Positions 2,798-63,717 of a stretch of DNA of 64,000 nucleotides are shown one piece after another. Below the pieces are notes generated by a model. The model had not been told where the DNA came from. It made no database searches and saw only the letters and a list, made by a program, of their open reading frames with translations. Origin of the DNA: Selaginella moellendorffii (Eukaryota; Plantae; Lycopodiophyta); contig NW_003314331.1 in the NCBI RefSeq assembly GCF_000143415.4, positions 622,164-686,163 of the forward strand. The letters are read 5' to 3'. Within the stretch, counting starts at the first letter, position 1. Each line of letters opens with the position of its first letter. A program made the position numbers and the translations under genes.

Positions 2798-3677
2798 ATG
2801 AAGGCTTACGACGGCAGCAGTAGCAACGGGCAGCACAAGAAGGCCTACGGCGGCAGCAGCAACGGGCAACACAATGTGTTCACAAAGGAAAAGCCCAAGG
2901 AGGTGGACATTTTTGCAATCGAGAACCCTGCTGAACGCAGGCGAGCAAGGTAAGCAAGACTGAGTTTGATCTTTACTTGCTTTTGTTTGTAACAGGTACG
3001 AGATCATAGGAACTCATCGTCCGGGTGAGGAGGAGGGCTTACTCGTCGACCAATGCAGAAGATGTAAGCAGAGAGGCCATTGGGAAAGACACTGCAAGGG
3101 GGTAAGAAAGCTCACTTATTTCCCAGATTTGACTTTTTGTTTCTTCTTTTAGCCTGGAGTGGATCCTTTTGCTCATGAACAAAAGAAATGCTACCTCTGC
3201 CTAATGAAGGGACACGATACTTATCAATGTTCAAGAGATCCCCTGCGAAATGAGGACTGGGCAGAGAGGACTTACACTGGACCAATGAAGAGACTTCGTC
3301 TTCAGGTTTGTATCAGTTTCTATTCTCTGTTTCTTTGTATGTTTATTTGTGTACGTTTTCAGGTGGGTTATATCGTTCAGGTAGCAGACTTCCCGCAATA
3401 CCATCCTCGTTTCTGCGTCCAACGGATTGAATACGAACACCTCAAACGGATCTGCAAAAAACATCCAGACTTGGGAATCATGGTTGTGCCTGAGCCACCC
3501 TGTCCTCTTGCGGCCCTTATCTGGGAATATTTTCAGCGACTGGATGAAGTTTTATACGAAGCAGGCCTAGGCTTCGAGTTTTACAGATCCGATGAAGAAG
3601 TGCCTCCAGGGTATGACCGGTATGCGGCTGCAGAAGAAGCATATATTGAAGAATTGAAAAATGAAGCGAAGCATTGA
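2798..3677 (+). CDS. Uncharacterised double CCHC zinc-knuckle protein, copy ZK1 (4 exons: 2798-2949, 2996-3101, 3153-3305, 3363-3677)
   Basis: GT-AG introns join into one open frame: MKAYDGSSSNGQH repeats, CRRCKQRGHWERHC, CYLCLMKGHDTYQC, then a C-terminal domain ending EELKNEAKH*. Structure conserved in five other copies. Confidence 0.8.
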
Positions 3678-3879
3678 AAGGTGATGTGTTTTAATAAAGT
3701 AATAGAATAAGTATTATAGATGAGAAGACCTTTATAAGTTATTTTTCGTTTTCATTGATGGGATACTTTTCGCATTAATTAAAACTAGCTAATGTTTATG
3801 TTTAAAACTAGTTTAACGCCTAGAGAGATTCTTTCTGGGAGAGTGAAGAACTCCTCCTTCCCGCTCAAGCGTTTTAGGG

Positions 3880-6359
3880 TTCGCATTGGCGCTGCGGAGC
3901 TGGAAGCGGCGGGCGCTGGATCGTCCCCACAAGAGGCAAGACTGCATTTTGCGAGAAATTTCTGGCCTGAATCTTGGCGTTGTTGGCAGTAGAATCGCCG
4001 AAATCTTTGCTCGCCGCTTCCCTGGTAGAAATCTGGTGCTTTTGTGTCTGTGCCTAGGCAGCGCAGCGATCCATGGGCCTACGCTTTCATCGAGCTGGAG
4101 AGGTCGCAACGCGGTGCTGGTACTCACGAACCGCCGCCGCCGGATGAGGCGTTGGTGCCTGAAACGAAGCTGGTGTTGCGCCATCATTCCAGCCGCGGTC
4201 CAAAGCTTTGCTACCTCGACAAGGCCGCGGACATTGGTCGCTTGAGGAGCTGCGACGCAGTAGAGGGTATCCTAAAGACGATGAGGGAGCAGCACGAAAG
4301 CATTCAGAGGAGGAACAACAAAGTTAAGAACTTTTCACTACACCAGTGGGACAAAGTCCAGCAGGAGCTGCAAGAATCGATCGTTCACTGGAAGCTGCTA
4401 CAGGGACTCGCCTCGACGTTTACATCCTTCATCCTTCAAAATATACGAGCTAATCAGGTACCAACCACAAGCTTTTTTGTTATCTTGGTTTCATCGCATT
4501 AAACTATGAACACTGCTACAGGTCACTGTGCTGATTGGTGAGACTGGCTCTGGGAAGAGCACTGGACTCATGCAGTATTTATGTGATGGTGGTTTATCGA
4601 GCAACGGGAAGTTCCATCGTTTGTACACAGCCTAGGAAAGTAGCAGCATTTGCTCTTGCACGACGGGTTGCCGAAGGATGCCGCTGAGAAGACGAATTCC
4701 ATTGGCCTCTTGGAATACAGGGCTCAACAAGACCTTGCCAAAATGGTACGGATTTACTCCTAGCAGTGCTGAAGGAATGTTTACGCGCACTTGAGAGTCA
4801 TCGTCATGTCAGCTACAGCCGATGCCGAGCTTTTCGTTCTTGGAAGGAATTTCCCGGTTGAGATCCACTACGAACAGCGTGAGACTTCAACCACGTAACA
4901 AGGACAATGGAAAGAGTTTGCGAGCTTCACAAGGAGGCCGATTGAGGGAGATATATTGGCTTTCCTCACGGATATCGAATGGGTCTGCCAGTGATTGGCA
5001 AATACGCCGCGTGCACTTGTGCTGCCTCTTCATGGAAGGCTTCGTCAAGAGGATCAGCAACTGGTATTCGAGGCAGCACCACCTGGTACGGGAAAGATGG
5101 TCTTTGCAACAAATATCGCCGAGACGTCTTTGACGATGCCAGGAATCAGGTACTTCAAAGTTCTTTTACGATAATCTTCCTTGAAGCATGTAGCTGATAC
5201 TCGCTTTCTCGGCTTCTAGGTACGTGGTGGATCCAGGATTGTCAAAGCAAGCCATCTTTGATCACAGACTGGGATGACAACGCTGGAGCTTACGGCAATC
5301 AGTCAAAGCCGCGACTCAAAGAGCTGGTCGTGCAGGGCGCATTAGTTCTGGTGTCTGCTACAGATTGTACAGCGATGAAGACTTTGACGACAATGCTCTG
5401 GTGGGGACTTCGGAAATTTCCCGTTCTCACATGGGGATTATCAAGCTCCTGGCACTAGGCGGATGATGAAGTGAAGAACTGGAGGCTCACGAAAAACTGG
5501 CCAAGATAGGAGTGGAGCCACGGCTAGGCAAGATCATCCTCGACAGCCAGGCTCACTGTTGTGGTCGAGAAGTCAGTACCCTGTGATGACCATCTTCTTC
5601 CGAGCCGGCTCTGAAGAAGCAAGCTCCTGGCAGACCGCCGGAAGATGCGCTGCTGTCATCGGCATGGAGACCTGTTCAGCCTCTTGGACGTGTACCGGGA
5701 ATGGAGCAGCAAGCTCGGCTGATAGCGACAACGAAATGAAGAAGCGCAGATAACACAGTTGACTTTGAAGGTATGCTACTACTCTTCATTCATGTTCCAG
5801 TAGGAAACCACTTTGTGAAGGTATCTCCCAAGGCGTATGGTACGAAGCGAATCGAGATCTCGTCCTGGAGCTTGCAAAGGCAGCTCTAGATAAACTGGTG
5901 GAAGGCGCTCCTTTTGAAGACGGCCTGCTGGACGAAGCTGCAATGAATGCAACCAGAAGGAGCGACAGATCTCACTGACGTCCACTTGGGATGATGAGAG
6001 TTCTGGTTGGAAAATCCGGGGTCGACTTAGCCGGGCTGGAAAAATCAGTGGGAGCTCCAGTGGCATTCCTTGTACGTACATGGGGACGAGGAATGCGTGG
6101 AGAAAGCAAAGCAGGAAGCAGCGTCCTGGAAGAACGAAGCAACCCAGCAGTGGCAGCGATCGTCAACGAGTGCAAGCTCAGGCTGTCAGGAGGTGTTCCT
6201 CGCCGTCGACTTCGCGGCCTTTCAGCAAATGGACGAGCTGTGCAAAGCTTCCGTGGGAGTTTGCGTGGCCACGAGCGGGGGAGCCACAGGTCCGGACTGC
6301 GAAAGCTCATCAGCGATCTTTGTCTAGAGAGCTTACTAGAGATTGAAGCAAAAAGATAA
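3880..6359 (+). pseudogene. Pseudogene copy H1 of an RRM-DEAH-box helicase-RING/IBR gene (DEAH11/DEAH12-like)
   Basis: Frameshifted fragments: RNP1-like AYAFIELE, Walker [47 protein letters not shown]2-like EPRLGKIILD, C-terminal RING-like remnant. Introns retained; many deletions. Confidence 0.85.
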
Positions 6360-6413
6360 GTAGTTTGCTATATATAGCATTAGGTTTACTCAGCCCTCTT
6401 CAGCGACGACACA

Positions 6414-7130
6414 ATGGAGGAGGCTGCTTTGGAGTTGCTGCGGTTCTACGTTTCTCACTTCGATCTTCCCACAGTGAGAATAGCTCCTGTAAAGAAGCAA
6501 AACGCACGCAGGCAGGAGTTCATAAAATGGCATTCTAGTGCCCAATCTTTTCGTTTGATGGGCCTTCTCCCCAAGGAGGAACTTCCTCCTGATTTGCGAC
6601 GCTTTGGGTTTGATACTTCTCCGGAGGCTCCACCGCCCACAAGGGCACCACGCCCTGTGGCGCCTACTTGCTGGGGTCGTTCACGACCCGAGTACGAGCG
6701 CCTCAAGGCTGCATATGACACAAGAGTGCAAGCGATGGAAGACATGTATCGTGCGGCAAGGGATGCCTGGGATGTTCAACACCGAAATAGAGTCCGCCAG
6801 CAAGCTGTTGTTTCAAGGTTCAGGGCTCTTATTGAGAGCCACAGAGGGGCACCTCAGTTGCACGTGCTAGGTGCTTCTTTCCAACATAGTGGCAAGGTGG
6901 AGACTCGTTTTGATGGTCTCTATGTGGTTGTGGATGGTGGGGAAAGGTTCCTCTGTCTTACTCCAGAAGAGATCTTCCCTAGTGGTGTGCAGGAGATCCC
7001 TTTGTTTGGGATATGCAGGATTGGCGACATTAATCATGAATTTTACTCCTGGGTTATGTCGAAATTCGAGGTAGGTCATGTGGTGAAGTATCCGGATTAC
7101 ATACGAGAGTACCCACACGGCATACCATAA
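6414..7130 (+). CDS. Orphan intronless 238-aa ORF of unknown function
   Basis: ATG-to-stop ORF with protein-like composition (Pro-rich linker, helical/coiled segment). Two decayed paralogues at 16229-17000. No recognisable domain. Confidence 0.5.
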   Translation: MEEAALELLRFYVSHFDLPTVRIAPVKKQNARRQEFIKWHSSAQSFRLMGLLPKEELPPDLRRFGFDTSPEAPPPTRAPRPVAPTCWGRSRPEYERLKAAYDTRVQAMEDMYRAARDAWDVQHRNRVRQQAVVSRFRALIESHRGAPQLHVLGASFQHSGKVETRFDGLYVVVDGGERFLCLTPEEIFPSGVQEIPLFGICRIGDINHEFYSWVMSKFEVGHVVKYPDYIREYPHGIP

Positions 7131-7730: not shown

Positions 7731-8850
7731 CATTTTGGAAAACTTGTCATGGTGAGGCTTACAATCTCCAATCTTCCACTGTGCATTAGATCTAATAAGT
7801 GGAAAGGAGATTTTGACCTAGTTCATCAGCATAAAGTAAATTAGAGGGATTGTTATAAATGTTTATTAGAGATTACTATTAAAAAGAAAATGTATTTTTT
7901 TATACTAGTAAGGATAATTTGCTACGGGTTGCATGTAACAACGCTTGGTTTGCTTAATAGTAGTATCATTCCTACTTATTAATCCAATTGATCAAATAAA
8001 AAATTAGAATTATAAAAATATTTATAATTTATAAATACATGCTATCAACCATTAGATGGTAGAATAAAAAAGAATATACTAGAAAGCGTTTAAGAAAGTT
8101 TATAAATTATAAACATGGTTATAAATCATAAATACAAGATTAATCTAAATAAATAACAACCATTGGATGGTAAAATATCCTAGAATATCCAAGAATATTT
8201 TAAATATATCCACTACCATCCCAGTCCCTTTACAGGTTTGCTTAAGCAAACCAAAAAATAGTTATGTTTACAAAATTTAATAGTAACTGCAACCAAGGTG
8301 ATTTAAGTTTTTATGGAGGCAAAATTGCATTTATGGTATATTGGGTAGTAAATACAGAAATAGTTTTTCTGATATATAGCTTTTTTGGGTTTAAAATTTA
8401 AATGTAATACAATATGAATGCAGTCACTTTAAGCTATAAAAAGTCACTGTATAATATTTAGAAATATTACTTGATAGGTTGATATAACATTTGAAGTTGT
8501 TCTTAATTCTCAAACATTTCAGAGTGATTTTATCTAAATCTAAAGTTCCATTTGCTATTTTATAATTATGTATAAATATTTTCTTAAACAGCTCGATTCT
8601 ATGTAGGTCGTTGATTAGATGCCTTCAAATATTGACCATCCAATTAATAACATATTTCCTAACCACAGAACAAAAAATAGAGCGTTATTGTATTGGAATG
8701 CCAAACTGGGAATAGATATGGAGCATTATAAAAGTAAAATAAAATATAAAAACATTATTTCTATGCATGTATTAATTTATATAAAGCATTTTAAAGGTCT
8801 AGTTAAACTATAGTCAATATTTATAAATGTTTTAATTAGAAAAATTATAA

Positions 8851-8853
<3 letters not shown>

Positions 8854-8935
<82 letters not shown>

Positions 8936-8950
8936 TGTATATGTATATAT
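8854..8950. repeat. (TA)n/(TATG)n microsatellite
   Basis: Directly visible. Confidence 0.95.
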
Positions 8951-8959
8951 TCTATTTTG

Positions 8960-9900
8960 TTGTTTACTTCTTAGCAAATTGGGCCCAAACTGTCTGGAAG
9001 GGGTATAGTCCTTATAAAACTTAAATACAACAAACCATAATTGCTGCAAAGCAGTATAATTTTTTAAATATAAAAGTCCAACTTTTAATGATATATATCT
9101 TAAAGCTATAAAGAAATATAAATATGATTTTTATTTTAGATTCCCATGTCTAACACCAAGTTTGTACATACTCTTTGTTCCACCTATGTCTTCATCTCGT
9201 GAATTTCCTCAGCTCTTCTAATATCTAAGGATTTCATAATTGCAAAATGTATTAGGCAATAAAAAACAACTGTATCAATCTCCTTTCAGCATTCTCCCAC
9301 CCTTTCTTATATATGATAGAACTAATTCTCAAATATAACAATTCTAGTATATATATTAGTATAGATATGAATTGTATATGATACCTTTATTAATGTATTT
9401 GCTATCTGATGTGTCAATATCATTTACCACAACTCTAACCACTTTTTGTAGAAATGTTTCAATTTATTAGTTGGAGTTTTATCCTCAACTATTTGGAACA
9501 ATCATAATGTCAAAGTCGAACTTCTTAAGATATATATAAAGGAAGAATAAATCATCCATTTTTGTAGGCTAAAAATGCTAGCCTTTAAGAAACTTTCTTC
9601 TCTTGTCTTTGATAATATTTGTTCTTCTGTGGAATGTAGCACCTTTGTGATATTAATGATGTAAATTGTTAGGCAGAAATGTTACCACAGCAATCTTTAC
9701 ATGAGTGTAAACACCAGCAATATATATATATACACATCATTGAATTCTACATTGTCTACACATGGACCTATATATAGGTTGAAAGCATCAATATGTTTTG
9801 CAATTAGGAAAAAATGTATGTTTTAGAAATAAATATGCTTAGTAAAATGGATTTATGTTCCTCTATAATGTTCCATTTAACTTTTCTACCCGGTCAAACT
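8960..9900 (-). mobile_element. Highly decayed retroelement remnant, probably Ty3/gypsy 3' region
   Basis: AT-rich with no ORF. Minus strand retains YIGP-like (9765-9780) and YVQTW-like (9145-9175) motifs resembling post-integrase/chromodomain segments. Confidence 0.35.
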
Positions 9901-10580
9901 CTAGTTGACTGTTTATTTTAGTTTATTGGTCTTTTAGCATAAATATTGCATTGAGAAGACAAAAAACAAAAACTCAAAAGGAATCAATTGTAAATTACAA
10001 GTAAACGTATCAGTCTATAGGTAAAATTCAAAAATAATATGCATTACTTTTTCTAAAAGCCAGATAATAATTCTGTGTGTGTATTTTACTATTCATTCTA
10101 ATTTTTTTTATAAAATTAAAACATCTATTTAATTTTATTTAGACCAGCATAGACTCTATATGTAACTTAAACCACAATAGCATATTTTAAATATATACTC
10201 TGAATATCTACGAATATTGCTGCTGGATTGTGGATAAAATAAACCTTTAAGTGGATTCTTTTGTACTCTTTCTCTTCCCTCCACTTGCTTGGCTAGTTTG
10301 TTCGGGGAGCATTTACTCCCTTCTCATCTCTCTTAAGATTACTATCGTTGCTGGGACAAATCCTGGCCGTTCGTTCGATATGCAACTTCAGAATATGCTT
10401 GGTATAAAGTTAAAAATTTGTGTTATAAGAATATAAAAATTTAAGCATACGTGTGTGTCATTTACTCAGTTTTTTAAAAAGTAAATTGAAACTATAACTT
10501 AATTATCATCCAAAAATTATTCATCTCTAAGTTTTGTAAATACATGTGTATATATATATGTATTACCCTGCCTAGATTAT

Positions 10581-10680
10581 NNNNNNNNNNNNNNNNNNNN
10601 NNNNNNNNNNNNNNNNNNNNNNNNNNNNNNNNNNNNNNNNNNNNNNNNNNNNNNNNNNNNNNNNNNNNNNNNNNNNNNNN
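10581..10680. other. Assembly gap (100 N)
   Basis: Run of n. Confidence 1.
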
Positions 10681-11330
10681 ATTTATGAACCATCCATAGT
10701 AGACCTTGAAAAGAGTACTTGTTGTAGGTTACCTAACAATGACCCACTAATATGTGTTTTGCTATAAAAGTTTATTCACAGGCTAAATTACGGATGTTGC
10801 GGATTATTTAATTGTTTCACGAACTCATATTAAAATTTATGTGGGTTGTGTAATTTTTAAATACATAAAGACAAACATATATTATGTGTGTGTAAAAATT
10901 AAGTAAGGTGCATAAATGGTAATTTTAGCCGTTGGATCTACCTTCTATGCTGGGACAAATCCTGGCCGTTCCTTTGTAATGCAACCTAAGAATATGCTTG
11001 GTATAAAGGTTAGCGTTTGAGGGTTTCACCAGAAAAGTAAGGTAATCTCGAGATCGATTGCATCCTCCAGGTATCGCCCAGCCGATCGATTCTATCGATC
11101 GCCATGGGGTGGAAGCTCGGTCGCTCATGGAAACCTAATTATTTGTGCCGCCCAGGCTGTGATCGCGCATCGGAGCTACATCTTGTTCAAAGCTCTCCTC
11201 TCCGCCGTAGGCCCTCTTTGATTGCATTGCTTAGGTAAGGGATCTTCGATAAACAGGATGAATTAAAGCTCGCATCTTTTCAAGAACAGGGTATAGCTAC
11301 CTGTGGGCTCTGGAGATTTCCTTTTTGAGG

Positions 11331-12282
11331 ATGAAGGCTTACAGTAGCAGCAGCAACGGGCAGCACAAGAAGGCTTACAGCGGCAGCAGCAACGGGCACT
11401 ACAGCAAGGCTTACGACGGCAGCAGTAGCAACGGGCAGGACAAGAAGGCCTACGGCGGCAGCAGCAACGGGCAACACAATGTGTTCACAAAGGAAAAGCC
11501 CAAGGAGGTGGACATTTTTGCAATCGAGAACCCTGCCGAACTCATACGAGCAAGGTAACCGAGATTGAGTTTGATGTTTACTTGCTTTTGTTTGTAACAG
11601 GTACCAGATCATAGGAACTCATCGTCCGGGTGAGAAGGAGGGATTACTCATCGACCAATGCAGAAAATGTAAGGAGAGAGGCCACTGGGAAAGACACTGC
11701 AAGGGGGTAACAAAGCTCACGAATTTTCCAGATTTGACTTTTTGTTTCTTCTTTTAGCCTGGAGTGGATCCTTTTGCTCATGAACAAAAGAAATGCTACC
11801 TCTGCCTAGCGAAGGGACACGACACGTATCAGTGTTCAAGAGATCCCCTGCGAAATGAGGACTGGGCAGAGAGGACTTACACTGGACCAATGAAGAGACT
11901 TGATCAACAGGTTTGTATCAGTTTCTATTCTCTGTTTCTTTGTATGTTTATTTGTGTACGTTTTCAGGTGGGTTATATCGTCCAGGGAGCAGACTTCCCG
12001 CAATACCATCCTCGTTTCTGCGTCCAACGGATTGAATACGAAAACCTCAAACGGATCTGCAAAAAACATCCAGACTTGGGAATCTTCATTGTGCCTCGGC
12101 CACCCTGCCCTCTTGCATCTCAAATCTGGGAATATTTTCAGCGACTGGATGAAGTTTTATACGAAGCAGGCCTAGGCTTCGAGTTTTACAGATCCGATGA
12201 AGAAGTGCCTCCAGGGTATGACCGGTATGCAGCTGCAGAAGAAGCATATATTGAAGAATTGAAAAATGAAGCGAAGCATTGA
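11331..12282 (+). CDS. Zinc-knuckle protein copy ZK2 (4 exons)
   Basis: Same exon structure as ZK1; four N-terminal repeats; both CCHC knuckles intact; no stop or frameshift in exons. Confidence 0.8.
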
Positions 12283-12499
12283 AAGGTGATGTGTTTTAAT
12301 AAAGTAATAGAATAAGTATTATAGATGAGAAGACCTTTATAAGTTATTTTTCGTTTTCATTGATGGGATTATTTTCGCATTAATTAAAACTAGCTAATGT
12401 TTATGTTTAAAACTAGTTTAACGCCTAGAGAGATAAAAAGAAGGTTCTTTCTGGGAGAGTGAAGAACTCCTCCTTCCCGCTCAAGCGTTTTAGGGTTCG

Positions 12500-15400
12500 C
12501 ATTGGCGCTGCGGAGCTGGAAGCGGCGGGCGCTGGATCGTTGGCGCTGCGCGGCGGGCGCTGGATCGTCCCCACAAGAGGCAAGACTGCATTTTGCGAGA
12601 AATTTCTGGCCTGAATCTTGGCGTTGTTGGCAGTAGAATCGCCGAAATCTTTGCTCGCCGCTTCCCTGGTAGAAATCTGGTGCTTTTGTGTCTGTGCCTA
12701 GGCAGCGCAGCGATCCATGGGCCTACGCTTTCATCGAGCTGGAGAGGTCGCAGCGCGGCGCTGGTACTCACGGACCGCTGCCGCCGGATGAGGCGTTGGT
12801 GCCTGAAATGAAGCTGGTGTTGCGCCATCATTCCAGCCGCTGTCCAAAGCTTTGCTACCTCGACAAGGCCGCGGACATTGGTCGTCTGAGGAGCTGCGAC
12901 GCAGTAGAGGGTATCCTAACGGCGATGCACGAAAGCATTCAGAGGAGGAACAACAAAGTTAGAACTTTTCACTACACCAGTGGGAAAAAGTCCAGTAGGA
13001 GCTGCAAGAATCGATCGTTCAGTGGAAGCTGTTACAGGGACTCGCCTCGACGTTTTCATCCTTCATCCTTCAAACTATACGAGCTAATCAGGTACCAGCC
13101 ACAAGCTTTTTTGTTATCTTAGTTTCATCGCATTAAACTATGAACACTGCTACAGGTCACTGTGCTGATTGGTGAGACTGGCTCTGGGAAGAGCACTGGA
13201 CTTATGCAGTATTTATGTGATGGTGGTTTATCGAGCAACGGGAAGATCCATCGTTTGTACACAGCCAAGGAAAGTAGCAGCATTTGCTCTTGCACGACGG
13301 GTTGCCGAAGGATGCCGCTGCTGTTACGAGAAGACGAATTCCATTGGCCTCTTGGGATACAAGGCTCAACAAGACCTTGCCAAAATGGTCTACACCACGG
13401 ATCACATACTATCTTTTGGCTCGAAATCTCGACCAATTCAGCTGCATTGTTGTGGACGAGCAGGGATTTACTCCTAGCAGTACTGAAGGAATGTTGACGC
13501 GCACTTGAGAGTCATCGTCATGTCAGCTATAGCCGATGCCGAGCTTTTCAGCGGCATCGAACAAGCACCACTTGTCGTTCCTGGAAGGAAGTTCCCGGTT
13601 GAGATCCACTACGAATTGCGCGAGAATTCAACCACGTAACAAGGACAATGGGAAGTGTTTGCAAGCTTCACAAGAAGGCCGATTGAGGAAGATATATTAG
13701 CTTTCCTCATGTCCCAAGACGGATATCGAATGGGTCTACAAATGATTGCTTGTGCTGCCTCTTCATGGAAGGCTTCGTCAAGGGGATCAGCAATTGGTAT
13801 TCGAGGCGGCACCACCTGGTACGGGAAAGATAACGGGAAAGATAGTCTTTGCAACAAATATCTCCGAGACGTCTTTGACGATGCCAGGAATCAGGTACTT
13901 CAAAGTTCTTTTTACGATAATCTTCCTTGAAGCATGTAGCTGATACTCGCTTTCTCGGCTTCTAGGTACGTGGTGGATCCAGGATTGTCAAAGCAAGCCA
14001 TCTTTGATCCACAGACTGGGATGACAACGCTGGAGCTTACGGCAATCAGTCAAAGCTCCACGACTCAAAGAGCTGGTCACTAGTTTTGGTGTCTGCTACA
14101 AATTGTACAGCGATGAAGACTTTGACGACATGGCTTTGCTGGGGACTTCTGAAATTTCCCGCTCTCACATGGGGATAGTAGTTCTCAAGCTTCTGGCACT
14201 AGGCGTACAGGACGTGGAAAACTTTGACTTTGTGGAGCCTCCCAGTGCCAGTGCTATCAGTCACGCAATGACAAGTTTGCAGCGGCTGGAAGCCATAGCT
14301 AAGGATGACGAAGTGAAGAACTGGAGGCTCACGAACTTCGGATTAAAACTGGCCACGATAGGAGTGGAACCACGGCTAGGCAAGATCATTCTCGACTGCC
14401 AGGCTCACTGTTGTCACCTGGGACGACCATCTTGGCTAGAGTTTGCGGCTAGAGTTTGCGGCAAAAACCAGAGCGGACTAGCTTGAGCAGCCACACAAGG
14501 TCCAGGATCGAGAGTCGCATGAACGAGCTTATGCATGCAGCGTCTGGTGGTGGAAACTGTCATGACAACTGTGGCGAGACAGAAGCGCTGGCTTCAGCTG
14601 GGATTTCGAACGCCCGTGACTCTGATCGGGTCTGCCGGAATGGTGAAAGAGATAGTGGCGCCTGGATCGTTCACGAGCGTGGAGGCCCGCTATGCAGACA
14701 CCTCGAAGCTGGTTGACAACGAGCTGCTCATTCTCTTCGACGAGTGCAGTGAAGGCATCCACAAGTTTTTTGGAGCGTCACCTCAGACAAGGTGGCGTTT
14801 AGATCGTGAGCTTCTGCCCAACTTGCGCTGAAACTCGGGGTCCAAGACGCACAATGTGACACTTTCAAGGCTGCCAACAGTCTGCTTATCACTCCCGTGA
14901 CGGAAACCTAACCAGTGAGCTGCGTTTGCTGCTGTATCTCATGGTGTCGTCTACGAGCTAGTTGCCGAGTGCGATCCTGGAGACATCGATGCCGTGATAC
15001 TTTCATGTACAGGAAAAGTCGTCTGTGGCTCATACGTTACGTGTAAAGTCAGCCAGCGCTCACAGTCCGGTGTGTTCATCTCCGGCTTCACCGACCTTGA
15101 TCTGGATCCCGAGAAACTGAAGCAAGAACTAAGAAATTCAACAACACCTTGAGTGCCGTAGGGCCTTCCCTCTTCGGCTGTACACAACAAGAGAAAGAAA
15201 AGAAAAAAGAAACCATGGCAGCCAGAAGCCAGTAAAAACTGTGGGAGTTTCATGTTCTCGGGAAGCCAGTCGGGCTCGGTTCGAGCGTTGATAAGCGACA
15301 CAATGGCACTGCACAGGCTTTGAGTGGGAAGAAGATGATGAAGGTTATCGTGCTTCATGGGAAAGCCGCGGGTGAACGCTCTGCAAGTGGGTACCAGCGG

Positions 15401-16009: not shown

Positions 16010-16228
16010 GAAATAAGTACTAAGATTAAGAGAATAAGAATAACTATACTGTAACAGGTTTTGCATTAATGGTAGAATATTTAAACATACAAAGCACTGA
16101 AGTTTAATATATACACAAGCGGGGTTCCAATCTTCATGTTATCCTTTGCAGTACAAGATGGATGATTAGTGTGAATTCTTGTGGGAGATGAGCCCTCTTA
16201 AGTGACAACACTCTTTAGTGACAATTCG

Positions 16229-17000: not shown

Positions 17001-17029
17001 TGTTGTTGCTGAAAAGGGCCAAGCGTCAC

Positions 17030-35626: not shown

Positions 35627-35699
35627 AAGGTGATGTGTTATAGAATAAGTACTATAGATATTAAGCTACAAAATTATGAGATAATACTTTGAATCATGA

Positions 35700-48800: not shown

Positions 48801-48854
48801 TGATGCTAATTAGTATCTGTGCCAATGACAAAAGCACAGTTTCCAACAGTATAC

Positions 48855-51456: not shown

Positions 51457-54400
51457 TCAGGCTTCCGGCCTGGGTACGTAGCCGAGCGTTTCAAGCGCAA
51501 AGAAAATGAGCTCTTGAGGCAGTCGACAAAACCTGTAGCTCCCCCCGCTCAAGGCCCGAAAACTCCCACGGAAGCTTTGCACAGCTCGTCCATCTACTGC
51601 GCTGTGAGCAAGGCCGCGAAGTCGACAACCCTGGCAGCCTTCGCAAGTCCATCCCTGTTCCTGATGCTCGATCCAAGCTGGTTGGCAATGCTGTCGCGGC
51701 AAAAGCTGTGGCCTCGAGCCCCTTCGGGCATAAACACACCGAACAATCCTTTTGCTGCGTCTATTGCCACTGCTACTGCTGGATTGCTTCCTTCTTCCAG
51801 ACGCTGACGATCTGTGCTTTGCTTGCTCCAAGCACTCATCCCCGTGCACGCCACCGGTGGTTCATGCTCACTGCAGCTCCCACTGATTTTTCCAGCCCGG
51901 CTAAGTCGACCCCGTATTTTCCCAAACACAGCTCTCATCATCCCAAGAGGAGCTCCCGTCGCCTCGCAGTGAGATCTTCTGGTTGCATCTAACCATGGCC
52001 GGTTTCCTCTTCAATCTTCTTTGCCAGGCGAAGCCCCTCTCTCGTCTTCATTGCAGCTTTATCCAGCAGGCCCTTCGAGAGGAGAGTCTTCCACCAGTTG
52101 TCCTGCCTTGCACCGAGCCACACCTTTCTCGTACGCCTTCGGAGATACCTTCACACAGTGGTTTCCGAGTGGAAAACGAAAATTGAATAAGAGTAGCATA
52201 CCTTCAAAGTCGCACCTAGTGTGTTATCCGCCTTGAGCTGCTCCATTCCCTTGGCAGAGTAAAGTGTAGACGGGAAGAGAAACTCCGCTTTGCATGTAAC
52301 TTTCTGCCACGCCTTCCCCACGCCTCAGACATCCACTTTCCTGTGCATGAAAGTATCACGGCATCGATGCAGCAAACGCGCCAGCTTTGAAAGTGTCGAG
52401 TTTCACCGCAAGTTGGGGAGAAGCTGTGCGTCAAAAGGCGACCAAACCCCACTTTGTCTGAGGTGACGCTCCAAAATCTGGAGATGCCTTCACCTCACTC
52501 ATCAAACACTATCTCTTTCACCATCCAGACACGATCAGAGTCACGGGCGTTCGGAATCTCAGCTGCTTCTCGATGCACTCGTTCTGAAGCCAGCACTTCT
52601 GTCTCGCCACTGTTGCCATGACAGTATACGTGCAGCTCGTTCATGCGGCTCTCGATCCTGGACCTTGTTTGGCTGACACCTTTGGCCTCGAGCTGCTTTT
52701 GTAGCAAAGCTAGTCCGCTCTGTTCTTTGCCGCGAACTCTAGCCATGAGAGTGTTCCCCAAGTTCGATATGACCGCTCTGTGACTCCAAATCATACCCGA
52801 ACGATCGGCCACCCATTCGGGATCCACGACGGTCACGCAGCTCAAAAACTCCCTCGACGAGCAGAAAAATACCAGCCCCAGTGGACAGTCTCTGGATGAA
52901 TGTGAGCCTCTCGACCCAGTCGTATCCGATTCGCCCGTTGCCAGAAAACTGCCAGCTTCTCCATAAAAGCCGACGTGACGATCTTCCTGATTGTCTCGTC
53001 CTTCAGGCCTCTTATCTGTTCCTGGAAGCTCCTCAGTGACTTTGCGTTGATGCTGTACACGTCCAAGAGGTTGAACAGGTCTCCATGCCAATGAGATGGT
53101 CGTCGAACTTCGACGGTCGAAGATGATATCAAAGGAATGAGAACCAGACCACAACTGTCGAGAATGTTCTTGGTGTTAATCCGAAGTTCCCAGTTCTTTA
53201 CTTCATCATCCAGCCGCTGCAAACTCGTCATTGCATGCCTGATAGCGCTGATGCTGGGAGGCTCCACGAAGTCAAAGTTTTCCACGTCCTATATGCCTAG
53301 TGCCAGAAGCTTGAGAACTACTATCCCCATGTGAGAACAGCAACGCCATGTCGTCAAAGTCTTCATCGTTGTACAATCTGTAGCTGATACCAGAACTCGT
53401 GCGACCTCTTTGAGTTGCGGAGCTTTGACTGATTGCATTAAGCTCCAGCGTTGTCATCCCAGTCTGTGGATCAAAGATAGCTTGCTTTGACAATCCTGGA
53501 TCCACCAAGTGCCTAGAAGCCGAGAAAGCGACATGGTTCAAGGAAGATCATCGTAAAAGAACTTAAGTACCTGATTCCTAGTATCGTCAAAGACGTCTCG
53601 GCGATATTTGTTGCAGAAACTATCTTTCTAGTACCAGCTGTTGCTGATCCTCTTCACGAAGCCTTCCATGAAGAAGCAGCACAAACAGCGTATTTGCCAA
53701 TCGTTTACAGACCCATTCGACATCCGCCTGGGACATGAGGAAAGCCCATCGGCCTCCCTGTGGAGCTCGCAAACTCTTTCCATTGTCCTTGTTACGTGGT
53801 TATCGATGTTGGCATTCCCGCGCAGTTCATAGTGGATCTCAACCTAGTACTTCCAGGAACGACAAGTGGTTTCGATGCCAAAGTAGTCGCTGAAGAGTTC
53901 CGCATCGGCTGTAGCTAACATGACAATGACTCTCAACATTCCCTCAGTACTGCTAGGAGTACTGAAGGCTTAGGCTTAGTTCCTGTTCTTCGTCCACCAC
54001 AATGCAGCTGAAACCGGTCGAGATTTCTAGTCGAGAGATAAAGTTGAAGCAGTACCAAGGTGCCAATGGAATTTATCTTCCCGTAACAGCCGTGACAGCA
54101 GTTCCCACTGAGCGACCGATTCTTGCATCCTCCTGGACTATTTCTCACAGTTCTAGTGAAAAGTTCTTAACTTTGTTGTTCCTCCTTCGTGCTATCGTCT
54201 TTAGGATACCCTTTACCGTGTTGCAGCTCCTCAAGCGACCAATTTAGGCAGTGAAGACAAACCTTTCCAAGGATCTCGCCGTTTTCTTGTTCGGACCACT
54301 GCTCGGATGAGCTACCCTGGGGATCCCTCAAGCGAAGACCCAAAACTCATCCAAGGGCTCTTCCCTCAAGCGAAGACCCAAAACTCCACCAGGGAGGCCG

Positions 54401-54740: not shown

Positions 54741-57700
54741 AATCCTGGAACAAAAACGTTCGAGCGGGAAGGAGCTCTACCTTCCCAAAAAAGCAAGCTT
54801 CCATATCTTCTAGTGTAGGTTTTTTCCATAGCCATGATGAGTACATTGTTTAATTTCTCGTCTCTAGCTATAGATCTATAGATTACTAGACCAGTTTTAA
54901 ATTAATGCGATAAACATGGAACAAAAACTAGTATTAGATTAGATTAACCCGCCCCAAACAAAACCCCCCAACCGAGCTGCTACTGGCTTGCTCTAGAGCG
55001 TATGCTATCTCGATGAGTGTTTTTCACTCTATTAATACCTTTCCTGGAATGTTTCTAACTTTTTGATTTGCTTAAGTGCTTGGATATTCTAAAATATTCT
55101 ACCATCTAATTCTTATATTATTATTATAATTTATCTGATTGCTAGTATATAGTTACTCAAAGAGTTCATTGTAGAGTATAATACCAAGTCATTAATCTAA
55201 AATAATCATGGAACTCTCACCAAAAAACCTAATTCTCTTCTAGTAAAAACTTTTAGAATTCTTTCAATTGAACTAATAAGTAAAACTGAACAGGAATAAC
55301 ACTACTATTTAACAAAATAATAGTATTTTTTTAAGGTTAGGTTTTTAGATATAATATTTTAAATATAAAAGTTTCATTGATGAATTTCTATATTATAAAT
55401 CTATAATATTATATTTGTAATTCTCTAGTGGATTAATTACTTCAATGCCATAGGATATGGATTGGATTAATTACTTCAATGCCATAGAACATGGATTTGT
55501 GAGTGCATAGAATATAAAAATGTGTATATTCAAATAGCCTAAAAACCTTAATTTATATATAGAAGTGACTGTTATAAGAAACCAATCTAATAGATATCAA
55601 AATCATATTACGCTAATATCAATATATGGCATCAAAGCTATACACTTGGACCTTACATTATCTCTTTTTCTCGGAAGGATGGAACGTACTTAAGATTCTT
55701 TGGTTAATAAAAAAGAATATGGAAAAACTTCACGAGAAGGTATCTAGATGGTGCAACTTATTCCTGATCCTTTTGTATGAAGCACTTTAACCACTATATA
55801 TATATATATACATAATTTTTAAAGGATCGATCTATTAAATATCATGCCAAACTTCATAAACTTGCAATCCAATTTATCACAACACTCAATATGGTCATTT
55901 CCACTAAGTAAAGATCTTTTTAGACAAATGATTGAGAAAACAAACTAATACTAGGTCATCCACTTTGTACTTTGTAGGTGGATGATAATGAAAGTTGTAG
56001 CACCATTATTATCTCATTTGTATGCAACCCAAGTATTCAATAAACTTCACTCAAACCAGTAAAAGAATGCTTATTAAATATTGCTTCTAGTACCTAGCTC
56101 ATGACAATTGTGAATGTAAATTCAACTCCTTTGGAAGTATTAAATCATGATTATATAAGAGTTTATATGGTGAAGCACTAATGAAACTTTGAACCTTGTG
56201 ACATACACATACCAAAGAAATTATCCCAATCTAAATGTTTAAAGTTTATATATTTTGCAATCATTCATCTAAAGGTCTGAACAAGCTGTTCCACTAAACC
56301 ATTTATCTAAGCATTCTTGACAGTGTGGGATATCTTTAGCTTAGACATTAAAACATGAATGCATCAATTATAAATTCAAGACCATTATTCGGAAGAATAT
56401 ACTCTGAACAAAAATGCTAAAACACTATTCAATTGAGGAGGAAATATCCAATAGTAGTTGCAAATGCACTAGCAACAACACCAATTTTCACCTAGTGAAT
56501 CATATAATTGAAAACAATAATGACATATTCTTTGTGAATAATTGATCGTGGAAAAGTCCCCATTAAATCAAATGCCATCAACTCAAATGGACTCAAATTT
56601 ACAATTGACTCAAACCATCTTTCTGCATCATGAGTCGGAGTATTATTAACTTAATATCAAACATAACTATGCATATACTAGATAATATCATGTTGCATCT
56701 TCAACCAATACAAAAATATATATAACTTTTCAGTCACACATTAATGTTCTATATGCCTACCTAGAATAGAAGAGTCATTGTAGGTGTGGAGAAAATATAG
56801 AATAAAGATTGAAGGCACCACCAATTATAAATAATCAGTCTCTATAAAATAATAAGGTTGTCCTTAATATGATATTAATATTGTAAATGCTGAAATGATA
56901 AGTTATTAACAAGTGATTTAAGATTCTCAAACCCATCATGAAGCAGTTGGAACCACAATTCAATCTTTTGAGCTTTATGAACCTAGATAAATTTTACTCT
57001 ACACCTTGTGGATATTGAACATCAACTATAGTAACCATTGACCACACAAAATTTTTGTTTAGAAAATGACACTAATGCTAGAATAACAGGCTTGTAAGGA
57101 ACATGGAAAGAGAGCAAAAAGATAAGCAAAACTTGAAAAAGGGCATTAGCATCAACCATACAACTCCCTCAGTGATGAACAACCTCAAAATTATATATCT
57201 AAAACTTCAAAGTCCACTAAGTCAACCATATGAAGTACCATAGCATGATCACCTTTTAGTAATGTCTAAGAACCATGTAAATATACATGAAGCAAACTGT
57301 TACTAAATATTCATTCTTTATCATAAAGTAATTTATCTCTACTAATTGTAATATATGACTCATATATGCAATAAAATAACACTAGCCAAACAATCAAACC
57401 ATACAACTCCCTCAGTGATGAACAACGTCAAAATTATATATCTAAAACTTCAAAGTCCACTAAGTCAACCATATGAACAAACTATTACTAAATATTCATT
57501 CTTTATCATAAAGTAATTTATCTCTACTAATTGTAATGTATGACTCATATATGCAATAAGATAACACTAGCCAAACAATCAATACATCAATATAAAAAAT
57601 ATCCATATACAAAATGAAAAGTCAAAATGTAGTTAAGATACACTACACTTAGAAGAGTTATCAATAATGTAAGCAATCAAAGGGAACAACTCGAGAGATA

Positions 57701-57921
57701 ATCCATAGAAATTCAAATATAAAGGGAAAGAGCCCATAAATAAAAGTGTACTTTTTTTTCCTAATTGGTTAAAGGTTTTGGGATATTTGGGGTTAAACAT
57801 TCTTGGGTTTGAATAGTACTAGGTTGAATGACCTTTCGAGAAGTCCAAATTCAAGAGCTTACATTTGGTATACCTTTTTTTCCAATCGGTTAAAGGTCTT
57901 GGGATATTTGAGGTTAAACAT

Positions 57922-60216
57922 TGTAGCGCATCCTATCTCTCTCCCCTTAAGCCAACTGGAAAAAAAGCAATTGCTTGATAAAAGAGCCTTTAGTGGCTAT
58001 TTTATCCCCATTTATCCCCCAAGGTTCCAAGGATCCACGGTGACAATATATCCAAATCTCATCCCATGATCTCATGCGCTACACTCACCCCCTCTTCAGA
58101 AATGTCAATGTCTTCATTGACTATTGACTAACAACCCCTACTGAGTGTTAGGATCCTATCCCTTACACCCTAAGCCAACTGGCTAAAGTGGTGATCACTT
58201 GATTGCAAGGCCCTTTCTTTATCCTATTATCCTGATCTAGTGCCTAACAATCCTCCCCTCATCAGGGAGTGATCATCTGCAATCATAGTTAGGCCACCCT
58301 CTGTAAGCAACCAAAGGGAACGACTTGAAAGACGATCCATGGGGTTCAAATATAGAGGGAAAGGGCCCATGAACAAGAGTGCACCCCCTTTTCTAATTGG
58401 TTAAGGGTCTTGGGATATTTGGGGTTAAGCGTCCTTGGGTTTGAATAGTACTGGGCTGGGTGACCTCCCGGGAAGTCCAAACCCAGGAGCTTACATTTGG
58501 TATCGGAGCGGTCTCGGGTCTGACTCTGTTGGTTGGCTTAGGGGAATCGCACGGGAATCGCACCACGTGTTGATTGACATCTGGCTGGTCCAGTTTGCTC
58601 CTGCTGGGCTCGACCCGAGGGGTAGGGTGTCAAGAGAGCAGGGCTCTCGGGAGAGCTGCGGCTCTCAACTTCTGTTCACGAGGGCGTGAACTTGCAGGGA
58701 AGCATGGTGGATTGTAAGCAACCAAAGGGAACGATTCGAAAGACGATCCATGGGGTTCAAATATAGAGGGAAAGGGCTCATGAACAAGAGTGCACCCCCT
58801 TTTCCAATTGGTTAAGGGTCTTGGGATATTTGGGGTTAAGCGTCCTTGGGTTTGAATAGTACTGAGCTGGGTGACCTCCCGGGAAGTCCAAACCCAGGAG
58901 CTTACACCCTCCCCTCGTCAGGGAATGATCGTCTGCAATCATAGTTAGGCCACCCTCCGGTCACCATGGTCCTTCTTTTAGGGTCTACCAAACCTTGGTT
59001 CTCCCCCTAGATTCACCATGTTGAATATTCCTTCAGAATATTCTTGCCCCACTCGTCAGCCATGAGAATCAAACTAGGCTCCAATACCAATAGTAGGATC
59101 CTATCCCTTACACCCTAAGCCAACTGGCTAAAAGGGTGATCACTTGATTGCAGAGACCTTTCTTTATCCTATTATCCTGACCTAGTGCTTAACAATCCTA
59201 TCTTTCAAAGATGTCAATGTCCTCATTGACTATTGACTAACAACCCCTATTGAGCCAAGGGGAACCAACACTTCCATTTCCACACTAGGCTCCAATACCA
59301 ATAGTAGGATCCTATCCCTTACACCCTAAGCCAACTGGCTAAAAGGGTGATCACTTAATTGCAGAGACCTTTCTTTATCCTATTATCCTGACCTAGTGCT
59401 TAACAATCCTATTTTTCAAAGATGTCAATGTCCTCATTGACTATTGACTAACAACCCCTACTGAGCCAAGGGGAACTAGCACCTCCATTTCCGCACTCAA
59501 TCTATCAATCCTTCCATTGTGTAGATTAGCTATTCCATGTGAGATAACTAATCATCCACCCGTACCGTAGTCATCATCCACCCGTACCGTAGTCCCATGG
59601 TGGATAGATACTCCACACAAGAGGAAGGACGTACGCATGGATGCCCAATACGTACGATTTCAAATTTAGGGGTAGGAATATATCTTGCTCAAGGGTATAT
59701 TATACTTTTAAGTAGCCACTAATAAATGGGAATCAAACCCGTGCCATTTGCTCCGATACCAACTGTAGCGCACCTTATCTCTCTCCCCTTAAGCCAACTG
59801 GAAAAAGGGCAATTGCTTGATGAGAGAGCCCTTAGTGGCTATTTTATCCCCATTTATCCCCCAAGGTTCCAAGGATCCATGGTGACAGTATATCCAAATC
59901 TCATCCCATAATCACATGCGCTACAACATGGATGTCCAATACATATGATTTCAAATTTAGGGGTAGGAATATACCTTGCTCAAGGGTATATTATATTTTT
60001 AAGTAGCCATTAATCAATGGGAATTGAACTTGTGCCATTTTCTCTGATACCAACTGTAGCGTACCCTATCTCTCTCCCCTTAAGCTAACTGGAAAAGAGG
60101 CAATTGTTTGATGAGAGAGCCCTTAGTGGCTATTTTATCCCTATTTATCCCCCAAGGTTCTAAGGATCCACGATGACAGTATATCCAAATTTCATCCCAT
60201 AATCACATGTGCTACA
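57922..60216 (-). mobile_element. TRIM family B (about 162-bp LTRs at 57922-58083, 59764-59925, 60055-60216), containing TRIM family C (about 104-bp LTRs from 58146, about 59092, about 59302)
   Basis: TGTAGC...GCTACA termini; AACAT TSD on both sides; reverse-strand Met-i PBS (TGGTATCGGAGC, TGGTATTGGAGC) next to LTRs; no coding capacity. Confidence 0.8.
58302..58906 (+). mobile_element. Intact Cassandra-like TRIM (605 bp; 194-bp LTRs with a 5S rRNA-derived segment)
   Basis: LTRs 58302-58495 and 58713-58906 differ at about 5 positions; PBS TGGTATCGGAGC; purine-rich PPT; CCCTC TSD. The LTR segment GTTAAGCGTCCTTGGG...TAGTACTGGGCTGGGTGACCTCCCGGGAAGTCC matches the 5S A-box/IE/C-box region. Confidence 0.92.
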
Positions 60217-61280
60217 AACATCCTTGGGTTTGAATAATACTAGGCTGGGTGACCTCTTGGGAAGTTCAAATTTAGAAACTTATAAATAGTTCTTTCAAAT
60301 TTACAAGTGCCCTTTTGCAATCTTTAAACTAAATAAAAAATGATGTTAATAACTTCAGTAATGCTTACAACTGTGCAGTATGATCAGAAAGATAATCAAT
60401 AAAATGACTGAAATATTACACCTTATCTAGAAAGTATTGCACATCATTTATACACTTTGGAGTATAGAACTTTATAACAACCACAAGTTTGTTATGATCA
60501 ACTTTCAAATCTTCACAAAAAATATAGTATCTAAAATAAGTTATATCTTTAAACCCAAACACGCACTTTGACCTCTTTAGTTTCAAACTAAATTCCCACA
60601 ACTTATTTAACACCTTGTAAACATCACAAATGTGCTCTTTTTACATCCCTTATGAGTGGATTAAGATATTATTGATGAAGTCACCAATCACTTTTAACAT
60701 ATTGTAAAGAATCTTATTTGCTAGAAAATTGCTAAAACATTGTTCAAATTGAATAACATCACCATGAACTTGTATAAATCAAATAGTACAAAAAACAATT
60801 TTAGGAACATCCTCTTTAGCCATTAGCATTTGCTAACATCTAAAATCAAAATTTAATTTGATGAACCAATTATTTCTCTAAAAACAGTCTAAAGTGTGAG
60901 GAAGAAGGGATATATTCAAGATAATCACATTGTTTAACTGACAATAGTTGATGTAAAATCAAATACTCCCTAGGCTTTATCATAAAATAATGTTCATATA
61001 TTCTGAGACTTTTCAATAATACCTTTTTCTAATATCTTTTTGACATTTGCATATATAATCTTTATCTCTTTTAATAATTGATGCTAAATAGGAACCTTGA
61101 TTGGACAAGCAATTATAATGTTGCTTAATTGATAATCAAGCCATTGTGATTTTTATATAATATTCTAGTGATTGTGAGCAATGTGTTTACGAAATTACTT
61201 ACATAAATGATAATTAACCCCAAAGTGGTTAATAATGATCTTGCAAAAAGCATCTATGCCAATGATAAAAGCACAGTATA

Positions 61281-62620
61281 CTATAAGCTTGTCTTCTTCA
61301 AAGCCATCTCAAAAGAAGATGTCATCACAGATGATATCAGAGTACTAGGAACCACACCTTCTTGACCACATGCATGAGCCTGGCAGTCAAGAATGATCTT
61401 GCCTAGCCATGGCTCCACTCTAACCTTGGCCAGTTTTAATCCGAAGTTCATGAGCCTCCAGTTCTTCACTTCATCATCCTTAGCTATGGCTTCCAACCAC
61501 TACAAACTCATCATTGCGTGACTGATAGCACTGATGCTGGGAGGCTCCACAAAGATGAAGTTTTCCACATTAGTGCCAGAAGCTTGAGAACTACTATCCC
61601 CATGTGCAAACGGGAAATTTCAGAAGTCCCCAGCAGCAGACACTAGAACTAGTGTGCCCTGCATGACCAGCCTTTTGAGTGGTAGAGCTTTAACTGATTG
61701 CCATAAGCTCCAGAGTTATCATCCCAGTCTGTGGATCAAAGATGGCTTGCTTTGACAATCCTAGATCCACCACGTACCTAGTAGCTGAGAAAGTGAGTAT
61801 CAACTACATGGTTCAAGGAAGATCATCATAATCGTTAAAGATGTCTCAGTGATATTTGTTGCAAAGACTATCTTTCTTGTACCAGCTGATGCTGCCTCGA
61901 ATACCAGTTGCTGATCCTCTTGACGAAGCCTTCCATGAAACAAGCGCGCATGGCATATCCGTCTGGGATGTGAAAAAAAGCTATATCTCCATCCTCAACG
62001 TCCCTATGGAGCTCACAAACTCTTTCCATTGTCCTTGTTACATGGTTGTCGATGTTGGCATTCCTGCGCAGATCTCAACTGGGTACTTCCTTCCAGGAAC
62101 GACAAGTGTTCGATGCAAAAGTAGTCGCTGAAAAGTTCTGCATTGGCTGTAGCTGGCATGATGATGAGTCTCAAGTCCGACCATGCACGCATACATTCCT
62201 TCAGTACTGCTAGGAGTAAATCGATGCTCAGGCTTCGCTCGTGTGCTTCATCCACCACAATGCAGCTGAACCAGTTGAGATTTCTAGTCGAGAGATAAAG
62301 TTGAAGCAGTACGTGATCCATGGTGTAGACCATTTTGGCAAGGTCCTGTTGATCCCTGTATAACAAGGTGCCAATGGAATTTATCTTCTCGTAACAGCCG
62401 TGGCATTCTTTGGCAACCCGTCGAGTAAGAGCAAAAGCTGCTACTTTCCTTGGCTGTGTACAAAGGATGGACTTGAGAAACAACCATCACATAAATATTG
62501 AACGAGTTGAGTGCTCTTCCCAGACTAATCAACACAGTAACCTATAGATTAATGCAAAGAAACTAGATGATAAAAACTTCTGGAGGTTCAGGCCAGAAAT
62601 CATGCGGGGACGATCGCTTC
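61281..62620 (-). pseudogene. DEAH helicase pseudogene copy H6 (partial; sister of H4)
   Basis: CIVVDEAHERSL, CTQPRKVAAF, NFGLKLAKVRVEPWLGKIILD; same truncation as H4. Confidence 0.9.
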
Positions 62621-62759
62621 CACCTAAAACCCTGGGAGAAAAACGTTTGAGCGGGAACACGCCAAAAACAGTAACCTTTATAGCTCTCTAGTGTCACCCC
62701 GATGGTTTAATCTCCAAGGTCTAGATGCCTTTCCACTCCTATCTATTTTTACTTTATTT

Positions 62760-63717
62760 TCATTCATTCATTCGTATACTGTTTAGCAGAGAAGCATACT
62801 CAAACTCATCCAGTTCTCCTTTGCTCTTCAATTCTTCAATCAATGCTTCATCTGCAGCTGCATACCGGTTATACCCTGGAGGCATTTCTTCCTTGGATTT
62901 GTATAACTCGAAGCCTAGGCCTGCGTTGAGAAATCCATCGAGTCCCTGAAAAGCTTCCCAGATTTGAGATGCAAGAGGGCGGGGTGGCTCAGGCACAATG
63001 AAGATTCCCAAGGCTGGATGTTTTTTGCAGATCCGTTTGAGGTTTTCGTATTCAATCCGTTGGACGCAGAAACGAGGATGGTATTGCGGGAAGTCTGCTA
63101 CCTGAACGATATAACCCACCTGAAAACGTACACAAATAAACATACAAAGAAACAGAGAATAGAAACTGATACAAACTCCAAGATGAATTCTCTTCATTGG
63201 TCCAGTGTAAGTCCTCTCTGCCCAGTCCTCATTTCGCAGGGGATCTCTTGAACAGTGATAAGTATCGTGTCCCTTCGCTAGGCAGAGGTAGCATTTCTTT
63301 TGTTCATGAGCAAAAGGATCCACTCCAGGCTAAAACAAAAAAAAAACAAAAAACAAAGAGTCAAAAATTCAATAAGTGAGCTTTCTTACCCCCTTGCAGT
63401 GTCTTTCCCAATGACCTCTCTGCTTACATCTTCTGCATTGGTCGACGAGTAATCCCTCCTTCTCACCGGGACGATGAGTTCCTATGATCTCGTACCTGTT
63501 ACAAACAAAAGCAAGTAAACATCAAACCATATAACCTTGCTTACCTTGCTTGCATACGATCGTAATCGTCCTCGATTGCAAAAATGTCCACCTCCTTCGG
63601 CTTTTCCTTTGTGAACTTCCTGTTGCTGCTGCCGCCGTCGTAAGCCTTCTTGTGCTGCCCGTTGCTGCTGTTGCCGTCATAAGCCTTCTTGTACTGCCCG
63701 TTGCTGTAAGCCTTCAT
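62760..63717 (-). CDS. Zinc-knuckle protein copy ZK6 (4 exons; long C-terminus subtype)
   Basis: Intact exons, nearly identical to ZK5 except for clustered amino-acid changes. Confidence 0.8.

Follow-up and report, generated by a model that had tools for sequence, protein, structure and literature searches.

We analyzed a window of 64,000 nucleotides from the spikemoss Selaginella moellendorffii (scaffold GL377635.1, about 622,164-686,163; scaffold length 997,799 bp), which holds six copies of a small gene, here called ZK, that encodes two CCHC zinc knuckles followed by an unrecognized tail domain. We consider it fairly likely that ZK represents a species-restricted CCHC-knuckle family which has multiplied by segmental duplication together with a neighboring helicase gene, which evolves by birth and death and by gene conversion, and of which several copies are kept by selection. 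Positions given below are those of the window unless another sequence is named.

Searches with ZK1 (blastn and tblastn) found exactly six copies in the window, and a multiple alignment demonstrated that all six begin with an ATG, consist of four exons, keep GT..AG at each of the three introns and have a coding sequence (CDS) length divisible by three. The encoded proteins are 241-265 amino acids long, and every copy carries two C-x2-C-x4-H-x4-C knuckles whose eight ligand residues are invariant. ZK1 (2798-3677, + strand; exons 2798-2949, 2996-3101, 3153-3305 and 3363-3677) is intact and encodes 241 amino acids, with knuckle 1 at 3054-3095 and knuckle 2 at 3189-3230 (both +). ZK2 (11331-12282, +; exons 11331-11554, 11601-11706, 11758-11910 and 11968-12282) is intact with 265 amino acids, and ZK3 (21818-20895, -; exons 21818-21628, 21581-21476, 21417-21265 and 21209-20895) is intact with a core of 254. 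ZK5 (51324-50378, -) and ZK6 (63717-62760, -; GL377635.1:684923-685880) are likewise intact, with 263 amino acids each. ZK4 (34677-35626, +) is a pseudogene: exon 3 contains a TGA (35189-35191), the sole in-frame stop among the six window copies, and exon 4 has a 9-nucleotide in-frame deletion. Two tail types occur, one ending in ..NEAKH and a long variant, found in ZK5 and ZK6, ending in ..SIRMNE, and they differ by one 8-nucleotide indel that lies some 12 codons ahead of the stop. An earlier reading of the window by eye (hereafter the first-pass annotation) had described six copies that keep start codon, splice sites, both knuckles and frame, with a stop in ZK4 only and with two C-terminal subtypes; the searches, the alignment and a check of the start codons agree with it on all of these points.

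The RefSeq models P0001 (XP_024515575), P0003 and P0019 are identical to the spliced models of ZK2, ZK5 and ZK6, respectively, and an independent annotation therefore places the same introns; P0002 corresponds to ZK3 with an added upstream extension. Here, P0001, P0002, P0003, P0004, P0010, P0019 and P0020 denote RefSeq products, and L001 and L004 denote stretches beyond the window, the former upstream on the same scaffold and the latter on the other haplotype.

All copies except ZK4 (five of six) have fragments of an HrpA-like DEAH helicase behind them, in the same orientation. Decayed remnants lie downstream of ZK1 (3886-7130, +), ZK2 (12540-16900, +), ZK3 (16900-20620, -), ZK5 (47814-50126, -) and ZK6 (60268-62524, -), and a further one without a ZK copy of its own lies upstream of ZK5 (51500-54055, -). 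The DEAH/RHA identity of this neighbor is based on motif I, GETGSGK, which can be read directly, and on similarity to the HA2/winged-helix region. The ZK1 unit has its motif I region (GETGSGKS) near 4540, with a frameshift after it; a 127-residue HA2-like piece of the ZK2-side remnant (14103-14486, +) matches E. coli HrpA with an E-value of 1.5e-14 and DHX15 with about 1e-9; and the ZK5 and ZK6 remnants give weak matches to the DEAD/DEAH Pfam family (PF00270) at 49630-50085 and 62013-62483. An intact helicase open reading frame (ORF) is absent, all sampled units being broken into short ORFs, and 48 of the 67 indels between the co-duplicated flanks are not multiples of three. The first-pass annotation had spoken of decaying co-duplicated helicase and gypsy sequences: the helicase part stands, and the gypsy part went unconfirmed, with no match to retroelement Pfam families among the ORFs tested in the AT-rich blocks of the window. 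The unit of ZK4 (about 34460-35680, ~1.2 kb) is the shortest of the duplicated ones, lacks a helicase and immediately follows a KEG-like host gene. The ZK2 and ZK3 units are inverted partners and form a large imperfect palindrome (11118-21967), in which the two helicase remnants meet tail to tail and join near 16.9 kb.

The co-duplicated flanks, with 467 substitutions and 67 indel events, served as the neutral yardstick for the ZK coding sequence, in which about 5% of random substitutions would make a stop. Our lesion test covered the 621-nucleotide core CDS of eleven young copies, picked regardless of intactness. The maximum-likelihood (ML) tree assigns 182 substitutions to these copies, and a count that takes each state change a single time gives a minimum of 119. 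From the neutral rate of the flanks, 6-9 stops and 12-19 frameshifts would be expected; the copies contain one and two, respectively (P from 0.02 to about 1e-6), a 5- to 10-fold shortage of such lesions. Moreover, indels in the intact copies measure 3, 9 or 12 nucleotides, with the 8-nucleotide tail change as the sole out-of-frame exception, whereas 72% of flank indels are out of frame. This deficit of lesions relative to the flanks rejects simple neutrality.

For codon rates, eight copies and 198 codons were analyzed with a GY94-type likelihood program of our own. Spliced sequences were built for the rate analyses only, and the queries for all searches were exon sequences or database proteins. 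Model M1a was preferred over M0 by 14 log-likelihood (lnL) units, with 55-57% of codons at a ratio of nonsynonymous to synonymous rates (omega) near 0. On a separate tree, the knuckle half had an omega of 0.39 and no positive class, and pairwise ratios of nonsynonymous to synonymous differences (pN/pS) were 0.3-0.55 in the first half of the gene. We conclude that selection preserves the reading frames of the live ZK copies; the knuckles are the most constrained part, and a few short patches evolve rapidly. The comparison of rates and indel spectra with the flanks, which the first-pass annotation had put forward, indicates that retention of the reading frames is not explained by recent age alone.

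Gene conversion is plainly active in the family. Of 2080 pairs of informative sites, 467 fail the four-gamete test. Divergence between ZK5 and ZK6 is 2% in the gene and 8.9% in the flank, while the corresponding values for ZK1 and ZK2 are 5% and 2.5%, and the sequence types of a hot-spot patch at the end of exon 3 are shuffled among copies, even between the two ZK4 alleles. Intron 3 and the adjoining ~100 nucleotides of exon 4 (3306-3465 in ZK1) show almost no variation among the six copies, with a nucleotide diversity (pi) of 0-0.02, and a hypervariable stretch of 12 nucleotides, that is, four codons (3294-3305 in ZK1, +), lies just upstream. The invariant block is probably a gene-conversion tract. 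A structured RNA was considered for the block and rejected, the fold z-score being +1.45 and no Rfam family matching.

The ZK cluster extends over ~100 kb and is present on both haplotypes, each with about ten loci; around one half of the members are dead. Cluster look-ups returned about twenty annotated family products, all from GL377635.1 or GL377629.1; the latter is the other haplotype: where the two scaffolds share sequence they are 96-99% identical, and they carry the same host genes in conserved order. There, the ZK2 allele and the copy at the ZK5 position are intact, the ZK3 allele is truncated at an inversion breakpoint (L004 6974/6980-7017), the ZK4 allele lacks the window's stop but has a 4-nucleotide deletion in exon 1, an extra copy carries a 1-nucleotide frameshift and a more distant copy is decayed. 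An extra ZK-plus-helicase unit of this haplotype occupies L004 10001-13141. The RefSeq products P0010 and P0020 resemble intact alleles of ZK1 and ZK6, the main difference being the number of N-terminal repeats. On the scaffold of the window, three further dead copies are located 18 kb upstream; one of them is split by a Ty1/copia element (ZK pieces at L001:4740-5201 and L001:9709-10078), in which Pfam recognizes gag, integrase and a retroviral polymerase SH3-like domain at L001 6545-9510. An 819-residue intronless ORF with no Pfam match (L001:1022-3481, -) and a dead ZK copy are 1.2 kb apart. Altogether at least seven dead copies, disabled by frameshifts, truncation, the copia insertion and independent hits to both ZK4 alleles, were counted beyond the intact set of the window. 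So many dead copies across the cluster indicate birth and death, not pure expansion; of the expanding family described in the first-pass annotation, the local duplication remains.

The N-terminal part of the ZK protein comprises 2 to 6 copies of a 13-residue repeat rich in Ser, Gly, Asn and Tyr and, to judge from its sequence, is probably disordered. Exon 1 of every copy contains a coding minisatellite with units of 36/39 nucleotides (11333-11479 in ZK2, +), and its copy number differs between paralogues and alleles (241 vs 265 amino acids for ZK1, 263 vs 276 for ZK6). Two retroviral-type CCHC knuckles follow, 12 residues apart. The tail domain of ~105 residues begins with an invariant H-x3-C-x12-C-x2-H set (codons at 3402, 3414, 3453 and 3462 in ZK1, +) and also carries an invariant PPGY. 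The H-C-C-H set falls on a predicted strand-strand-helix segment in models of low confidence and has no Pfam zinc-finger match; compared with the classical beta-beta-alpha C2H2 zinc finger, its ligand order is reversed. It may form a third zinc site, and the tail would be an orphan alpha/beta domain. Because the AlphaFold2 models are of low confidence, with a predicted local distance difference test score (pLDDT) of 37 for the full protein and 49 for the tail domain alone, we infer fold, zinc site and disorder from the sequence.

An exhaustive profile search of seven family proteins against 1.84 billion representatives returned the family itself and two marginal generic-knuckle matches, and a word-index protein search found no relatives beyond S. 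moellendorffii. As far as public proteins show, the family appears to be restricted to this species. When each exon and seven family proteins were queried against Pfam, neither exon 1 nor exon 4 had a match, and the knuckle matches were weak: PF00098 scored 17.2 bits for exon 2 (gathering cut-off 20.8), and PF13917 scored 22.5-23 bits for exon 3 and for P0001 (cut-off 27). The best family member reached an E-value of 1.7e-6 in the Pfam knuckle match, and a precomputed database table assigns PF13917 to P0001-P0003. No exon and no family protein matched the G-patch family (PF01585), even with E-values up to 1 allowed. A profile search of the PDB with the tail domain gave nothing below an E-value of 0.8, an ESM Atlas feature search gave no usable match, and Foldseek comparison of the tail model with the PDB gave nothing below 4, as expected from so poor a model. 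The C-terminal domain of about 105 residues thus stays unrecognized, as the first-pass annotation had called it, and the structure prediction with Foldseek that it proposed brought no fold. As genes, however, the members are not undescribed, being already carried by RefSeq and UniProt as uncharacterized (CCHC) proteins. In the published literature, nothing relevant was found on S. moellendorffii zinc-knuckle genes or on six locus tags.

In another reading, the family would be the live part of a genetic-conflict system, either a defense against retroelements or viruses or a selfish locus of the killer/antidote type, with the variable patches setting specificity. Local amplification with birth and death, the different copy states of the two haplotypes and the nucleocapsid-like knuckles are consistent with it. 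The rate analyses are also consistent with it: M2a was preferred over M1a with a likelihood-ratio test (LRT) statistic of 17.2 (p 2e-4), placing 15% of codons at an omega of 4.6, and the same comparison on a separate tree of the tail half gave 27.5. The clearest hot spot is formed by the last four codons of exon 3, which show at least five states and no synonymous change, directly beside the invariant block. However, site-model tests are prone to false positives under recombination and multi-nucleotide changes, both of which are present here, and since gene conversion is active, positive selection on the tail and the four-codon patch is only suggested. Furthermore, pairwise comparison of the tail half gives a pN/pS of only about 1, the neighboring helicase is dead, and there is no partner gene. 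We therefore regard it as unlikely. The same holds for a more specific form, in which the ZK proteins would be nucleocapsid-like RNA binders engaged in conflict, the four-codon linker and the tail patches would set specificity and the tail would be a new zinc-binding fold.

Several points weigh against maintenance of the family by selection and against the functions proposed for it. A single omega for the whole gene is 0.81, indistinguishable from 1, and the tail-half pN/pS just given tells in the same direction; a selected family, as the first-pass annotation had it, is borne out by the depletion of stops and frameshifts and by the low omega of the knuckles, but not by this overall value. Gene conversion from intact donors could erase lesions without selection, and it also inflates tree-based substitution counts. 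Transcript-derived assemblies contained no exact product for P0001, P0003 or P0004, which carries little weight since the index mostly lacks these RefSeq products. Confinement to the cluster refers to annotated members, and unannotated copies or a transposable-element (TE) source elsewhere are possible. Finally, the Pfam knuckle scores fall under the gathering cut-offs in exon-by-exon queries, the structural models are poor, and nucleic-acid binding is read from the knuckle motif only.

Some of these points would be explained if the ZK copies were young functionless duplicates, pseudogenes in waiting whose frames are open through recency and gene conversion. The overall omega agrees with this, as do the many dead copies of the wider cluster, the active gene conversion, the lack of exact products in the transcript-derived assemblies and the average divergence of exons, which at 0.070 compared with 0.079 for introns are no more conserved. 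However, even the lower count of 119 mutations predicts 6 stops and 12 frameshifts, far more than were seen, and the in-frame character of the indels in intact copies, the 8-nucleotide tail change aside, contrasts with the flanks. The gain of M1a over M0, with over half of the codons at an omega near 0, and the value of 0.39 in the knuckle half also stand against functionless duplicates, and so does the decay of the neighboring helicase, which was copied in the same duplications. On this evidence we give the idea of functionless duplicates a low probability.

Among known systems, the Gag nucleocapsids of retroviruses and long terminal repeat (LTR) retrotransposons share with ZK two tandem C-x2-C-x4-H-x4-C knuckles with an aromatic residue in each, and by analogy these knuckles suggest binding of single-stranded nucleic acid. 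In contrast to Gag, ZK has no capsid-like domain; the part before the knuckles is only ~90 residues of repeats plus a short conserved segment, and no match to Retrotrans_gag or related Pfam families was found. There is no adjacent protease/pol and there are no LTRs, as self-comparison revealed no flanking direct repeats and the neighbors are helicase remnants or host genes. ZK further differs by its three spliceosomal introns, by the orphan domain after the knuckles and by a sequence likeness that is confined to the knuckle. Kinship to the gag of the copia element inside the cluster was likewise rejected, similarity being limited to the knuckle. The view of the first-pass annotation that ZK is no ordinary gag thus holds, and the profile and Pfam searches yielded no match to a known TE protein beyond the knuckle.

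A mobile-element part or cargo, that is, a gag-derived gene or a host fragment on a DNA element with copies made by transposition, would fit the retroviral-type tandem knuckles and the scatter of copies in both orientations between unrelated host genes of a TE-rich region, but it is improbable because the annotated members all lie in one allelic cluster instead of genome-wide and other retroelement features are missing (no capsid, protease, reverse transcriptase or integrase domain, no copy flanked by an LTR or terminal repeat, likeness to the local copia gag at the knuckle only and no polyprotein with the tail domain among the 1.84 billion representatives), while unit lengths vary and the neighboring helicase is shared, as in segmental duplicates. 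Ordinary host genes separate the ZK copies, which favors segmental duplication in a genic region.

Cellular proteins such as CNBP, Air1/Air2 and the ZCCHC family (PF00098, PF13917) resemble ZK in being small proteins with CCHC knuckles as their sole recognizable modules, and PF13917 shows weak similarity to ZK over knuckle 2 and the following residues. ZK differs from them in having only two knuckles that score at or below Pfam cut-offs, and in its N-terminal repeats and tail, which have no relatives. Air1/2 and ZCCHC8 work with RNA helicases. A helicase gene adjoins ZK as well, but it belongs to the DEAH/HrpA type rather than to Mtr4, and in all sampled units it is a pseudogene. With plant clusters of nucleotide-binding leucine-rich repeat (NLR) or F-box genes, the ZK cluster shares its mode of evolution, namely segmental duplicates in tandem or inverted arrangement, numerous pseudogenes, gene conversion, differences between haplotypes and rapidly changing patches inside conserved frames, whereas the ZK protein is unrelated and the family is very small, occurs in a single species and has no known link to immunity.

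Taken together, we favor a model of segmental duplication followed by selective retention. A unit composed of the ZK gene and an HrpA-like DEAH helicase gene would have been duplicated and inverted locally at the DNA level. After duplication, the helicase copies would decay, as would about half of the ZK copies, while the remaining ZK copies would be kept open by selection amid frequent gene conversion. Their product would most likely be a small protein that binds single-stranded RNA, or less likely DNA, via its knuckles, as the motif suggests, and its tail domain would contact a partner.

The neighborhood of the ZK copies contains ordinary genes. An ORF with a linker-histone H1/H5 domain, coding for an H1-like histone, lies at 37-483 (+; Pfam E-value 1.3e-8), a histidine kinase/response regulator gene at about 22.1-26 kb (-) and an amine oxidase gene at 42405-44063. 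The KEG-like gene directly upstream of ZK4 (27612-34000, +) encodes RING, kinase and ankyrin domains and five Mind-bomb (MIB)/SH3 repeats and seems intact on both haplotypes. ATG101 and Syja_N genes are annotated at the corresponding positions on the other haplotype. AT-rich blocks (25-35% GC) occur at 8000-10000, 46000-48000, 55000-58000 and 60000-62000, and a segment repeated inside them (46318-47146 vs 55589-56398) is 82% identical. An assembly gap of 100 N (10581-10680) lies ~650 nucleotides upstream of the ZK2 ATG. Its flanks are collinear with the other haplotype, which has 222 nucleotides where the window has 217 including the 100 N. Because the gap is outside every ZK copy and is bridged by the other haplotype, the finding is unaffected by it.

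The practical importance of the family is limited, since it concerns one spikemoss, has no known phenotype and consists of members already listed as uncharacterized proteins. If the live copies are expressed, however, ZK would be a clean and compact case of a plant gene family of very recent origin in which an orphan domain is maintained and diversified. The co-duplicated helicase provides an internal neutral control within the same duplicated units. Moreover, with both haplotypes at hand and different copies dead or live on each, gene retention and loss, and the balance of gene conversion and selection, can be addressed within one genome.

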